A stretch of DNA of 64,000 bases from Salpingoeca rosetta (GCA_033442325.1 JAWQFM010000011.1:802096-866095), one strand, 5' to 3'; shown: positions 7,515 to 12,609, counted from the first letter of the stretch. Numbers and translations are program-made. Notes: generated by a model not told the origin, from the letters alone.

Positions 7515-10500
7515 ATGCAAGAGGCCGCACATGTGCCCAACCCAGAGCGCGACGCCATCACATGCGCTGTCATTGTGAGTCTTCCTTCCCTCGTTCATGT
7601 GTGACTGTGCCGGTCATGCATTTTGGTCCTTGTCTGCGCGGGTGTCCGCCTGTGTGTATGTTTGTGTCCGTGTGTGTTTGTGTGTGTAAGTTTGTGTGTT
7701 TGTGTGGTTGCTTGTGTGCGACTGTGTGCGTGTGTGTGCGGATGTTTGTGTGTGTGTGTGTGTGTGTGTGTGTGTGTGTGTGTGTGTGTGTGTGTGTGTG
7801 TGTGTGTGTGTGTGTGTGTGTGTGTGTGTGTGTGTGTGTGTGTGTGTGTGTGTGTGTGGTTGCTTGTGTCCGTCTCTCTCTCTCTCTCTAGTGTCTCTGT
7901 GTGCGTGTCCTGGTGTTTGGTGATACGCTCTTGACCAATGGTTGACTGACCCCGCTCCGTGCTTTCATTGTGTGCTTTTTGTTCCGTGTTCTTCACAGGA
8001 GGACCCCGTGCTCTATCAATCAAAGTATTGTGAGTTGCTGTACAATGTGTGTGTGTGTCAATGACAAGCTGTGGTGATGGCGGTGCCAACGCAAACGATG
8101 ATGATGATTATGGTGGTGGTGATGGTGATGGTGGACTTTACTTTCCATTGTGACTCATGAATATTGCTTGCACCCTCACGCACACACACACATGTCCAGA
8201 TGAACGCCACACGTTTGAAGAATGGTTCACACGTCTGAACGGCACGGTGCCTGGTATGTATGCATGCGTGTGTGATGATTCCTCAGACTCAGCTGTTGAA
8301 TGCCGCCTTGTGATGTGACTACAGACTTGATTCTTCGTCACGAAGACGTCTCATGGCCTTGAATTACGCACATATGCACCTGCCTCCCACTCACGTACAC
8401 TCACACTCACACACTCACACTCACCCACACACTCACTCACCCACTCACTCACCCCCTCACTCACCCACTCACTCACTCACTCACTCACTCACTCACTCAC
8501 ACACACACACACACACACACACACACACACACACACACTCACTCACTCACTCACACACACACAGAGCCGGAGGAAATCCCTGCAGAGGAGAGGGAGCGCA
8601 TCATGCGGGAGCGAGAGGCCCACAGCGAGCTTGCCCTTGATGCACAGAATGGCCTGGACCTTATCATCCCGCCATCCCTCAAGACGCTCATCCAGAAGAA
8701 GCTCATTGGCCCGGAGTATGACGCGCCTGTCGTCATTGTTGTGGGCAAGGAAAGTGATGGAAAGTCCCTCACCCTCTCCCGCCTCATCGTGCGTCCCATC
8801 TTCCCCTTCCGCGACAACATCTGCACGCTCATGCCCGTCAAGGTGAAGCTCAAGACGCAAGCCAAGGCCAGCATCCCAAAGGTCTACGCTGTGGAGATTC
8901 AGCCCGACGGCACGCGCACGCCGGTGTCCACGACTGTCCACAACTACACGGGCACCAACCACGGGAAACCTGCGCCCATTATGGAGGACTACGTGCCACT
9001 CGAGTTCCTGCAAGAGGCCATTGAGGAGCGAATGATCTTTCTCGTCGACTCGGAGTACCCGCAAAAGCAGCAGCCAGAGGAACCGGAGGGCCCGGGTTTC
9101 CTTGGCAAGCACCGCTCGGGTGTGCTTGGCAAGCACCGCTCCAGTATGCTTGCCAAGAAGAGCGAGTCCCAACCCAAACAGCACCGCAGGCCCGTGTCGA
9201 TGCGATATGAGGTTGTGGTTGAGCTGAGCGGGCCACACTTCCCCAACATGACACTGGTTGATCTCCCAGGCGTTGTCGCCACAGACACGGCAAACGCAAA
9301 CCTCCCCCGACAAACGAGGTACATGCATACACGTGTGTGTGTGTGTGTGTGTGTGTGTGTGTGTGTATGTGTGCACATGCCTGTCTATTCTGCTGGGCAC
9401 TCCATGCATGCGTGCATGTACGCATGCCACCTGACTTGCACAACTTCTTATGCTCTCGCCTCCTCCCAACACAACACGCACACCCCCCTCCTCTGTCACC
9501 GCCATCAGGGAGCTTGCCCAGCGGTATCTGCGCGCGCATGCGGAGAACAGCTTCGTGTGCGCGGTCATGTCAGTGCAGAGCTCCATGGCGGCCAACGATG
9601 CTCTGGCCGTCATTCGCGAGTGCAACATGCTCTCAAGCAGCATCGGTGTGCTCAGCAAGACTGACCTGTGCTACCCGCAGGCCGTACACGAGGCACGCTT
9701 CGGGAAGCTTCCTGTGGACCTTGGGTACGGGTTGTGCTGTGTCGCCAATTGCGTCTTGAACGGCGAGCGCCTGGAGATGAAGACATTCACGGAGCTGAAC
9801 CACCGCGAGGAGGCGCAGCTGAACAAGCTCAGGGAAGCCAAGGACGTGTTCAAGCAACAAGAGAAGATTCGCGCCATGGAGGAGTGCTTTGGTATTGACC
9901 GCGTCCAGCGCAAGCTTCGCGACAGCTTTGAGACTTACCTGTGCGAGGTGTGGGCGCGCCGCACGCAGCAGGCCCTTCGCCGCTCCCTGCAGGACTTTGA
10001 GCGCGGTCTTGACAGGCTTGGCTACCCGTTTGTGCGCTTTGAGGAGGAGGACCAGGTGATTGCGCGGCGAGAAGCCCTGCATCAGCATGAGCCAGATCTT
10101 GGCGCTTCTGAGCGCGGGCAGACGACAAGTGAGGTTGCGCGTGCCGTGCTCGACCACGTGTCCAAGACGCTGCCCACGTTCCGCGTGGACCAGCTCCTCT
10201 GCACCGAGCTGCACAAGCGCATTGTTCGCCTCTTCCGCCGCGTGAACAGAGCCATGGCCGCTATTGCTCGGGAGAGGCCCGTTGCCGCCACCGGTGTGCA
10301 CACCCTCCGCCACACCCTGCAGGCGCACTGGGCCCGCATCAAGGCCGCGTTTGAGGCATTTGCGCAGTCACTCCGCACCACCCCGCTCTCGTCCGTGCTC
10401 GTGGAGGCGGCGGTGGCCCACCTGCGCAGCGTGGAGTCAGAGGTGAAGATTAGCCGTTTCTCGTCGCTCATCACTGCCATTCGGGAGCAGCTCACCATGC

Positions 10501-12609
10501 AGCTGGACACGCACGTGGACCAGAACATCAACGCCATTGTGGACGCGTTCATGCAGGACAGGCTCAAGGATGTGGAGCAGATGCTGCGATTGAAGCTCGT
10601 GCCTGCAGGCATCGCACACGCGCCACGTGCTCACGGAGCGGTGCCTGTCGCGGCGCTGCGAGAAGCCGCACCGGCGGCACCCGCTGCCACTGCTGTTGGC
10701 ATCGACGATGACGACAATGACGACGATGAGGAGGAGCAGCAGCAGCAGCAACAGGAGGAGCAGGAAGAGGGAAGTGCTTCTGCGGATGATAATGAGGAGG
10801 AAGAAGAGGACGGTGCGGAGTTGTTGTGGGGCGTGCGTGTTGTGGTTGACGGGCAGACGCTTGTGAGCGATTTGGGCACCAAGCTGACCGCTGTTGGCGA
10901 GGAAGTGCAGCAGGTGCTGCGTGATGCAACCTTTGAGGAGGGCGTTGTTGTGGAGGACGAGGAGGTGACACAGTGCCGCATCAACACCTTCCGCGACATC
11001 GGTGATGTGTGTGAAGTGCTGTCTGAGATCCACGTCGCGCTGGGCGACTATGAGCAGCGGTGCAGTGAAGCCCGCGCCCGCGCAGCCAACGCATCCCCGG
11101 CTGCCAACGAAACGTCTGCGATTGAAGGCGACCTCGACTTGCCGCATGACGACAACAGGACGAAGCTGCTCGCCATGCGTGACCGCATCCAGCAGCGGCG
11201 TCAGCAGCAACAACGTGCAGATGCTGATCCGGGCGACGGTGGGACTCATGACGAGGACGAGATGGTGGATGAGGTGACCATCGCCACCAACTCGGCAGAC
11301 ACCTTGCGCCGTGCACTCGCCATCTGCCGCCAGGCCAACTGCGTTCGACATCTCACGTGAGTCTTTTTCGTATGTGTGTATGAATGTATGTATGAATACT
11401 TTCTTGTGCTTTCTTGTTTATGTGTGTGTGTGCTTTCTTGTGCTTTCTTGTTTGTGTGTGTATGTGTGCGTGTGTGCGTGCTTTCTTGTGTACGTGTGGT
11501 TTGCATACGTTGGCCGCTGCACTTGTTCCAAATTGTGTATTCTTGTGTCAGCTCAATCCGCCTCCTTGTTAATCGTCATCCTGAATGCCGTCAGGTTGGA
11601 GACGTGTGTGCTTGCGGACGTGTTGCGCGAGTTTGGACGCCTCTTCCCTGAAATGCGCAGGCTGCGCAGTCTTCGTCTGAAGCAGTGCGACCTTTCCGAC
11701 AAGAACGTGCAGGACACACTTCATCTCGGCCTCCAGCGCAACACAACCATGAACACCTTCACGTGAGTCTCCCGGCTTGTTTGCATCCAATGATAGAGCG
11801 CACTTGTGTGTGTGTGTGTGTGTTCTTGTGGATGTGCGTGTGTGTGTGAGTGTGTGTGTGTGTGTGTGAGATAGTGTGGATGTGCGTTTGCACATATTCG
11901 TGTTTGCGCCATTCGTTGGTGTGTATGTGTGTTATGTTATGCGGCGCTTGTTTCGCCTTGAGGCTGACCCATCGCTATGGGTGTTGAAATACATGCGTGT
12001 GGCTGTTGTTGTGTTCAGGGTGCAAGACTGCGGGCTGGGTGGGCCGTCGTCTAAGCTGCTGCGAAATATCGTTTCTGTCAACACCACCCTCGACGAGATC
12101 ATGTACGTTGACCGCTCATGTCTCAGGCACATGCATCCGTTGCTATGTGGCTCTATGCTTGTGCTTTGCAGCTGTTTTGTTCCGTTGCACACGTTTCTCT
12201 CGCGCAACTCGCATCGACGTCACGTTGACACAATGACCAATCATCCGCGTCGTCATCACCACCACCACCAAATATTCAACAACAAACCAACAGCATCAAG
12301 ATGCCCTCGAGCGAGGCCGGCGAGTACGCGGCGGTGAAGGCAGCGCTGCACGACAACGATGTGTCTGCACTCGTACGAGCACTGTGCACAACAGAGGAAG
12401 TGGCGCAGGGTGTGCTGACCAAGTACGTTGATGCAGGCAGTCAGTGGGAGGCCGTGTCGGGCGACGTGCGAGGGTGTGCCAAGTGGGGAGAGCGGCTGAC
12501 GCAGGAGCAGCGGGAGGCGGTGATGGCTGCTGGCCGCCAACGTGTCCCCATTGATCGCCAGAAGCGCAAGGCGTGGCGCGTCGACCACCGCATCTGCTTC
12601 CCCGCATGA
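7515..12609 (+). CDS. U-box + dynamin-superfamily GTPase + helical region + RNI-like LRR fusion protein (8 exons)
   Basis: Phase-consistent GT-AG exons 7515-7574, 7999-8029, 8200-8253, 8565-9318, 9509-11356, 11595-11762, 12019-12102, 12294-12609. Exons 1-3 give RDAITCAVIEDPVLYQSKYYERHTFEEWFTRLNGTVP (U-box-like). Dynamin motifs: G1 VVIVVGKESDGKS, G2 NICTLMP, G3 TLVDLPG, G4 IGVLSKTD. C-terminal LRR-like units LRSLRLKQCDLSDKNV and VQDCGLGGPSSKLLRNIVSVNTTLDEI. Confidence 0.8.

Follow-up and report, generated by a model that had tools for sequence, protein, structure and literature searches.

Can a dynamin-superfamily GTPase carry a ubiquitin ligase of its own? The question is raised by PTSG_04477, a gene of the choanoflagellate Salpingoeca rosetta that lies at 7515-12609 on the plus strand of a 64,000-nucleotide (nt) stretch of genomic DNA (GCA_033442325.1 JAWQFM010000011.1:802096-866095; hereafter the window, from whose first letter all positions are counted). 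Choanoflagellates are the closest living relatives of animals. Dynamin-superfamily GTPases are membrane remodelers, with Mx proteins and guanylate-binding proteins (GBPs) acting as immune effectors, and to our knowledge none is known to carry its own ubiquitin-ligase domain. Public annotation describes PTSG_04477 as hypothetical or as a Dynamin N-terminal domain-containing protein only. A first-pass annotation of the DNA had proposed that the gene encodes a U-box ubiquitin ligase, a dynamin/Mx-like GTPase and leucine-rich repeats (LRRs) in one protein, the U-box being hidden in three micro-exons. We report that PTSG_04477 joins in a single protein a partly eroded U-box, a complete dynamin GTPase with its bundle signaling element (BSE) and stalk, five LRRs of the ribonuclease inhibitor (RNI) type and a short tail. 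RNA-seq, profile searches and structure prediction all back this architecture. The protein is a GTPase of the dynamin superfamily with its own U-box, and it leads to a large family for which we found no description in the literature.

One transcript and one protein of 1104 residues

PTSG_04477 consists of eight exons separated by seven introns, every one of them bounded by GT..AG, and its frame closes at 1104 codons. Translation of the spliced sequence gives the deposited protein (P0001) without a single difference over its 1104 amino acids (aa). The micro-exons are thus hidden in the sense that a naive list of open reading frames (ORFs) omits them, but the deposited annotation already splices them in. 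The start codon stands in a strong context (GCCGCCACCATGC), the nearest in-frame stop upstream of it is at 7296, and no upstream ATG occurs in the known 5' untranslated region (UTR; 7410-7514), whose minimum extent is given by a 165-nt contig overhang before 7999.

All exons lie on the plus strand. Exon 1 (7515-7574, 60 nt, aa 1-20) carries the start codon and loop 1 of the U-box (DAIT.AVI). Exon 2 (7999-8029, 31 nt) adds EDPV and a beta-hairpin and ends in phase 1 within the Tyr codon of YER, and exon 3 (8200-8253, 54 nt) supplies the (Y)ER..FEEWF helix and the start of loop 2 (GTVP). These three exons are flanked by GT..AG, and splicing to 8565 carries their frame on into the GTPase exon. 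Exon 4 (8565-9318) encodes the C-terminal helix of the U-box-like domain, a linker/BSE helix and motifs G1-G3 of the G domain with a disordered insert, while exon 5 (9509-11356) encodes the remaining G domain (G4), the stalk, an acidic insert, helices resembling the GTPase effector domain (GED) and the first LRR unit. Further LRR units come from exon 6 (11595-11762) and exon 7 (12019-12102, one unit), and exon 8 (12294-12609) ends the protein with the last LRR helix, a low-confidence tail and the stop codon TGA (12607-12609).

RNA was mapped to 7860-12700 from two stranded raw RNA-seq runs (X21 and X22) and two older contig sets, all from S. rosetta. A (GT)n repeat at 7747-7858 was excluded from the mapping, so that junction 7574/7999 rests on read overhangs rather than on a listed joint: 20 and 91 reads and two contigs support it, the overhang at 7999 being the last 30 nt of exon 1. 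For junction 8029/8200 there are direct joints in 10 and 43 reads of the two raw runs and in two contigs. Masked repeats coincide with two junctions, 8253/8565 and 9318/9509, whose support comes from overhangs and a contig; at the former, 14 reads carry an overhang equal to the first 19 nt of exon 4, and contig 7 (run X5) passes through it. The three micro-exon junctions proposed from the DNA are all supported in this way. Downstream, the joints 11356/11595 (22 and 51 reads, GT..AG), 11762/12019 (58 and 114 reads) and 12102/12294 (47 and 55 reads) connect the LRR exons. Contig 7 (4809 nt) takes in all eight exons without a break: exons 3 to 8 align collinearly, and the 165 nt that overhang before 7999 account for exon 1 together with 105 nt or more of 5' UTR. 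The LRR exons thus sit in the same transcript as the U-box exons and not in a separate one. First mates fall on the minus strand, as expected for a plus-strand mRNA in a dUTP-type library.

In X22 the usage of the micro-exon junction (43 reads) is similar to that of the junctions downstream (50-114 reads), and among the read starts reported for the mapped interval there was no cluster at 8603. Together these two observations fail to support a transcript that starts at 8603 and lacks the micro-exons. PTSG_04477 makes one mRNA and one 1104-aa protein, and its expression is steady in ordinary cultures of several studies. It could still be asked whether two or three neighboring genes had been misfused by annotation or assembly, or whether the micro-exons fit the U-box pattern by chance, given that exons of 31-60 nt can arise fortuitously in GT-rich introns and that the Pfam U-box score is weak. 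This explanation is practically refuted by the stranded reads and contigs from several studies that connect every exon, by an ortholog transcript of another genus with the same N-terminus and by an intron position held in common with a paralog.

Two further observations concern the reads themselves. Within intron 2, 19 RNA molecules (X22) begin at 8033, and 14 reads at 8193 run on into 26 nt (AAAGAGCAAGTTCAAACACACTCAGA) that do not occur in the window; these reads (8033-8193) may come from another locus, since the GAT/GGT triplet repeat of this intron is common across the genome. At window position 10049, C replaces G in 3 of 19 reads (X21) and 3 of 92 (X22), a difference that could reflect an allele, an error or editing.

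An eroded U-box, a dynamin GTPase and leucine-rich repeats

The identity of the central domain as a dynamin GTPase is certain. The G domain (aa 101-400; 8720-9809) is recovered by Pfam, phmmer, family alignment columns, structural modeling and Foldseek alike. Exon 4 matches Pfam Dynamin_N with 46.8 bits (cut-off 27; E 4.4e-12), and phmmer against the PDB finds Vps1 (4.5e-11), dynamin and DRP1 (about 1e-8) and Mx proteins (1.7e-6 to 3e-5). Because Vps1, dynamin and DRP1 precede Mx among the best matches, the GTPase is not Mx-like in a specific sense. All four dynamin G motifs can be read directly from the sequence, with the substitutions that the first-pass annotation had listed for G1, G2 and G4: G1 GKESDGKS (8744-8767), G2 CTLMP (Thr136; 8822-8836), G3 DLPG (Asp281; 9260-9271) and G4 SKTD (Ser349; 9654-9665). 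They occupy columns that are nearly invariant among 97 relatives. The Glu of G1 is a family trait, GxE(S/N)xGKS being present in almost all of the best 150 relatives, whereas the fission dynamins and Mx proteins (dynamin, DRP1/Dnm1, Vps1, MxA/MxB, Mgm1/OPA1) have GxQSxGKS.

Beyond the G domain, a full-length AlphaFold2 model built on the family alignment (mean predicted local distance difference test score, pLDDT, 79.9; predicted template modeling score 0.71) places helices of the BSE/stalk region at aa 417-660 and 784-870. Foldseek aligns this model to full-length dynamin 1, MxB, MxA, DRP1, Mgm1 and OPA1 over 750-870 columns (E 4e-16 to 1e-12). The long helical region (aa 417-870; 9858-11219), proposed from the DNA to be stalk-like with an acidic insert, can be taken on this basis as a dynamin stalk with BSE-type helices and GED-like helices, recognizable in the model by fold only. 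Segments modeled as disordered are aa 226-244, within a G-domain insert at about 215-262, and aa 672-703 and 718-735, within the acidic/poly-Q insert of the stalk region at about 669-737 (window about 10614-10820). PTSG_04477 is therefore alike to the fission dynamins and Mx proteins in G1-G4, G domain, BSE and stalk fold. It differs from them in its large disordered inserts and in what flanks the dynamin part, a U-box N-terminal to the G domain and LRRs C-terminal to the GED-like helix. Among its Pfam matches we found no membrane-binding module, either a PH domain or a transmembrane segment, and the same scan recovered no NACHT or NB-ARC STAND core, Dynamin_N being the sole NTPase domain. Weak Pfam matches to the CAP12/Pycsar TIR domain (E 0.02-0.03), with no stretch above threshold alone, and to DUF6348 and DUF4888 were set aside as chance. 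A shared-word protein search with the stalk exon recovered only PTSG_04477 itself, and one with P0011, a relative described below, few relatives.

C-terminal to the stalk are five RNI-type LRR units (aa 886-1019; 11265-12351) spread over exons 5-8. A profile of the LRR region built from the orthologs matches ribonuclease inhibitor (E 2.1e-7) and, more weakly, designed and NLRP LRRs. In the model this region forms five strand-helix units whose strands start at aa 886, 912, 941, 970 and 998, a beta-alpha periodicity of 28-29 residues. BLASTP gives 40% identity to the Microstomoeca ortholog over 139 aa with an internal repeat visible, and the language-model neighbors of the region are LRR_6 clusters, which we treat as a lead only. 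The RNI-like LRRs proposed at the C-terminus are thus borne out by profile and model. The last 85 residues (aa 1020-1104; 12352-12606) contain no recognizable domain or fold and have low model confidence.

The N-terminal U-box-like domain (aa 10-76; 7542-8647) extends across exons 1-4. A hidden Markov model (HMM) built from those U-boxes of the relatives that pass the Pfam cut-off scores 23 bits on PTSG_04477 and 19 bits on the Microstomoeca ortholog, in the first half of the domain only. When the two orthologs are compared with 30 canonical U-boxes of the family, hhalign gives 95.2% probability (E 2.7e-8; 37 columns, aa 6-42), and the two-sequence ortholog profile matches the soybean PUB13 U-box in the PDB (E 0.0055). 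Kept in the alignment are the loop 1 Ile, DPV, YER, EEW(F) and the loop 2 Pro. The positions of Ile15, Trp39 and Pro48 are retained; in solved U-box complexes they contact the ubiquitin-conjugating enzyme (E2). The Tyr codon of YER is interrupted by intron 2, which shares its position and phase (phase 1) with the sole U-box intron of the paralog PTSG_02966. Identity between S. rosetta and Microstomoeca is 64% in the U-box region, 54-74% in the G domain, 32% in the stalk, 38% in the LRRs and 16% in the tail. A model of aa 1-120 reaches pLDDT 90-96 over aa 11-60 with a beta-beta-alpha-beta-alpha order, and nearly all of its top 35 Foldseek matches are U-box domains or proteins, such as Prp19 in spliceosome entries (best E 0.06). 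VIA-align superimposes model residues 8-76 on the whole U-boxes of Ufd2, E4B, CHIP and LubX (62-66 residues, Z 5.0-5.6).

Several results weigh against reading PTSG_04477 as a straightforward U-box-dynamin-LRR protein. Pfam scores its N-terminus against the U-box profile (PF04564) at 14.5 bits, below the cut-off of 21.4 (E 0.041; profile positions 2-43 of 73). The SPxT(R/K)...LxPN of the family is replaced by VPEPEEIPAEE, and no profile aligns the C-terminal half of the domain, beyond aa 43-51. In our reading of the alignment, informed by general knowledge of U-boxes, the domain also appears to have no basic residue at the position that usually activates the E2~ubiquitin conjugate. The fold prediction is not independent, as its input alignment is rich in true U-boxes, and the best Foldseek E value and a Z of about 5 are weak to middling. 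Elsewhere in the protein, Pfam finds no LRR_6 or other LRR at E <= 1 in the single LRR exons or in aa 880-1104, and no Dynamin_M or GED match at E <= 1; the stalk was assigned despite the latter.

From the sequence comparisons, we read the N-terminal domain as a U-box by descent that has kept its E2-docking positions and whose second half is eroded; by predicted fold it is probably a U-box as well. The proposal of a U-box in the micro-exons stands as regards homology, through profile comparison, and probably as regards fold, but the domain can be recognized by sequence only in its first half. Similarly, the Pfam domains expected of the spliced protein are present for Dynamin_N, while the U-box stays below the cut-off and no LRR is called. 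Whether the domain is an active ligase is made uncertain by the sub-cut-off score, the unmatched PxT(R)...LxPN half and the apparent lack of the activating basic residue. With known U-box ligases (CHIP, Ufd2/E4B, Prp19, plant PUBs and Legionella LubX) it shares I-T-x5-DPV, YER and EEW and probably the beta-beta-alpha-beta-alpha fold, which in the prediction aligns over the whole domain. It differs from them in a loop 2 that is short and acidic and in the missing LxPN helix motif, and its U-box sits on a dynamin where theirs sit on TPR, ARM or WD40 modules.

A protist family of U-box-dynamins

The family to which PTSG_04477 belongs, as a diverged member, is large and made up of protist proteins that typically have a canonical U-box directly before a GxESxGKS dynamin. 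An exhaustive phmmer search gave 986 relatives at E <= 1e-3, and we surveyed the domains of the best 150. Of the relatives, 129 have an N-terminal extension of 45 residues or more ahead of the P-loop; the U-box HMM matches 76 of these, some with two tandem U-boxes. Canonical examples include S. rosetta PTSG_02966 (P0006), with a Pfam U-box (E 1.5e-16) directly ahead of Dynamin_N, and P0037, with the same order (U-box E 2e-11). C-terminal repeats vary: Microstomoeca roanoka P020574 (P0011) combines a U-box (8.7e-13), Dynamin_N (2.3e-21) and a C-terminal LRR_6 (1.7e-16), P0123 a U-box (E 1.8e-7) ahead of Dynamin_N with a WD40 C-terminus, and P0051 a U-box (E 5.6e-6) ahead of Dynamin_N with an NHL C-terminus. 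By Pfam, about 6 of 48 scanned C-termini carry repeats (NHL in 3, WD40 in 2, LRR_6 in at least 1). The U-box-dynamin order is therefore common, and the fuller U-box-dynamin-LRR arrangement recurs in P0011. The canonical relatives (PTSG_02966, P0011 and the environmental members P0123 and P0051) share with PTSG_04477 the U-box-then-dynamin order and the G-domain clade; their U-boxes pass Pfam (E 1e-16 to 6e-6) and keep SPxT...LxPN, whereas PTSG_04477 and its Microstomoeca ortholog retain only the first half.

In a tree of G domains, PTSG_04477 pairs with the Microstomoeca protein (support 99), and this pair then joins Hartaetosiga P0005 and S. rosetta PTSG_08093 (support 98). The group falls inside a clade of 101 rows (support 99) that holds all 65 U-box rows. 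This placement, the YER intron held in common with PTSG_02966 and the conservation of the U-box region between the two species all speak for an origin of the N-terminal domain from a working U-box. Named members come from the choanoflagellates S. rosetta (PTSG_02966, PTSG_08093 and PTSG_04477, the three clear paralogs in searches of the family), Microstomoeca and Hartaetosiga, as well as from the dinoflagellate Symbiodinium natans and an MMETSP transcriptome. The remaining members are for the most part environmental, and the contigs they lie on have a eukaryote-like gene content; a bacterial origin of the metagenomic members was considered and tentatively set aside, the contigs of P0123 and P0030 being gene-sparse or eukaryote-like in gene set. 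Paralogs are numerous in places: one EukProt source yields at least nine paralogous gene names, and a JGI metagenome contig of 43,955 bp (L011) carries three clustered U-box-dynamin genes at 5057-15866, one of them split by the gene caller. This cluster adjoins an ABC transporter and a TPR_10/TPR_12 protein. In P0085, P0078, P0119, P0090 and P0130, GxESxGKS dynamins that lack a U-box, the head is instead a CAP-Gly, MSP, DnaJ or UBA-like domain, and most of these proteins fall outside the U-box clade.

Two relatives show peculiarities of their gene models. P0003 (298 aa, 52% identical to aa 48-301 of PTSG_04477) has in the place of the U-box an N-terminus that resembles a translated CA-rich intron (THPTHPPLHSHTH); judging from this sequence, its gene model probably missed the U-box micro-exons. 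The case carries a lesson for annotation, namely that U-boxes split over micro-exons are easily lost. In PTSG_02966, the last ~270 residues are repeated near-exactly in a second ORF about 1.1 kb downstream (L007 2626-3444 versus 3736-about 4560, both on the minus strand; G000:C4), apparently by tandem 3' duplication or duplication in the assembly.

Literature searches returned no characterized U-box-dynamin-LRR protein, as the first-pass annotation had supposed, and neither the fusion of a U-box to a dynamin nor PTSG_04477 itself is the subject of any paper found. The fusion also goes without mention in a recent survey of how the dynamin superfamily evolved. Dynamins and U-boxes are treated separately in a paper on the origin of Mx (PMC11326297), our source for the age of Mx, and in one on giant viruses (PMC11915834). 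The fusion is no one-off, but a large family over several protist lineages that goes unmentioned in the papers searched.

Scaffold, relic or sensor

What might such a protein do? Ligase activity, self-assembly and any immune role of PTSG_04477 are what we infer from its domains. The general mechanism that we lean towards, with modest confidence, is that of a self-assembling GTPase scaffold that would bring an E2-docking domain to LRR-bound partners. PTSG_04477 probably binds GTP and self-assembles via its stalk and G domains like other dynamins, with its LRR cap probably serving to bind a target protein or an adaptor. The N-terminal domain, with its kept Ile, Trp and Pro, would recruit E2~ubiquitin, leading to ubiquitination of targets near the assembly, and assembly may gather U-boxes and so switch the ligase on. 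Given the erosion of loop 2 and of the PN helix motif, any ligase activity is possibly weak, or replaced by a docking or dimerization role. If the U-box is active, nucleotide-driven polymerization would be linked directly to ubiquitin tagging, a link for which the only other examples known to us involve separate proteins (GBP coats and RNF213) or RING lattices (TRIM5alpha). An E3 module is joined to a large NTPase in RNF112/ZNF179 (RING and a GBP-type GTPase) and RNF213 (AAA and RING/RZ). In these proteins the module is a RING and not a U-box, the NTPase is of the GBP/atlastin or AAA type rather than a dynamin/Vps1-type G domain with stalk, and they are not known to carry an LRR.

The functional readings of PTSG_04477 overlap, and the probabilities we attach to them are not exclusive. 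It is possible, although we hold this more tentatively than the scaffold mechanism, that the U-box is a relic, the N-terminus serving as a structural, dimerization or docking module and no longer as a ligase, on a dynamin-like remodeler of membranes or scaffolds aimed by its LRRs. The loss of the loop 2 and PN-helix motifs in both S. rosetta and Microstomoeca would fit such decay, as would the replacement of the nearly invariant Pro of DPV in the Microstomoeca ortholog and a nearest paralog clade (P0005 and P0007) whose U-boxes are likewise eroded or unrecognizable. Against decay speaks the conservation of the U-box region between the two species at the level of the G domain, together with the retention of the E2-contacting positions and a predicted structure that still closes the whole U-box fold. 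Somewhat more doubtful is a role in proteostasis or organelle quality control rather than defense, in which a CHIP-like ligase on a dynamin scaffold would work at membranes or organelles and couple fission to ubiquitin tagging, or serve the turnover of the endoplasmic reticulum (ER) or mitochondria. The heads of the wider GxESxGKS clade (U-box, UBA-like, DnaJ and MSP) share a theme of ubiquitin, chaperones and ER contacts, the best sequence matches of the GTPase are the membrane-fission dynamins Vps1, dynamin and DRP1, and expression is steady in the cultures of several studies. This link is by association only. The 101-row U-box clade does not include the DnaJ, UBA and MSP proteins, and the Pfam matches contain neither a PH domain nor a transmembrane segment that would place the protein at a membrane.

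We regard as unlikely that, along the lines of the function proposed in the first-pass annotation, PTSG_04477 is an immune sensor resembling NLRs, in which the LRRs would sense a microbial or viral ligand or a damaged membrane, GTP-dependent polymerization would follow on the target and the U-box would tag it, by analogy with GBP coats and RNF213 or with TRIM5alpha lattices. The layout of effector, NTPase and repeats is that of NLR/STAND proteins, and the repeats are of the RNI type with weak matches to NLRP LRRs; the core, however, is a dynamin with no homology to NACHT or NB-ARC, which limits the comparison to an analogy of layout. Relatives swap the C-terminal repeat among LRR_6, WD40 and NHL, paralogs have expanded (the three-gene tandem cluster on one environmental contig and the nine or more in one EukProt source), and Mx proteins and GBPs provide generally known precedents for immune effectors within the dynamin superfamily. 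Yet only about 6 of 48 family C-termini have a repeat that Pfam recognizes, S. rosetta searches gave only three clear paralogs, the GTPase is no closer to Mx than to Vps1 or dynamin, and PTSG_04477 is expressed in ordinary cultures. Moreover, the DnaJ, UBA-like, MSP and CAP-Gly heads of the sister dynamins are those of housekeeping adaptors and not death-fold or TIR effectors, which by analogy suggests proteostasis or trafficking as much as immunity. Repeat-module swaps and local expansions fit a family engaged in conflict or immunity, and the other heads fit ubiquitin, chaperone and trafficking biology. More improbable still is the broader proposal that U-box-dynamins form a protist-wide class of pattern-recognition proteins, functionally analogous to NLRs, in which a variable C-terminal repeat (LRR, WD40 or NHL) would sense a pathogen or danger signal and so license GTP-dependent polymerization, and the U-boxes, clustered and thereby activated, would coat the target with ubiquitin, PTSG_04477 being the LRR-bearing representative of S. 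rosetta. As S. rosetta is transfectable and gene-editable, the canonical PTSG_02966 and the eroded PTSG_04477 provide a natural test pair for a link between polymerization and ubiquitin tagging.

Two observations concern other open frames of the genome. Directly downstream of PTSG_04477 and tail-to-tail with it, a highly acidic ORF with runs of D, E and G occupies 12993-13448 on the minus strand; the 3' ends of the two may overlap, since the 4.8 kb RNA contig extends ~1.3 kb past 12700. Outside the window, Pfam U-boxes at G000:C6:1308874-1309074 (E 4e-13) and G000:C12:1173990-1174199 (E 7e-9) of S. rosetta lie in open frames of 8012 and 8145 residues, respectively, suggesting giant U-box proteins.

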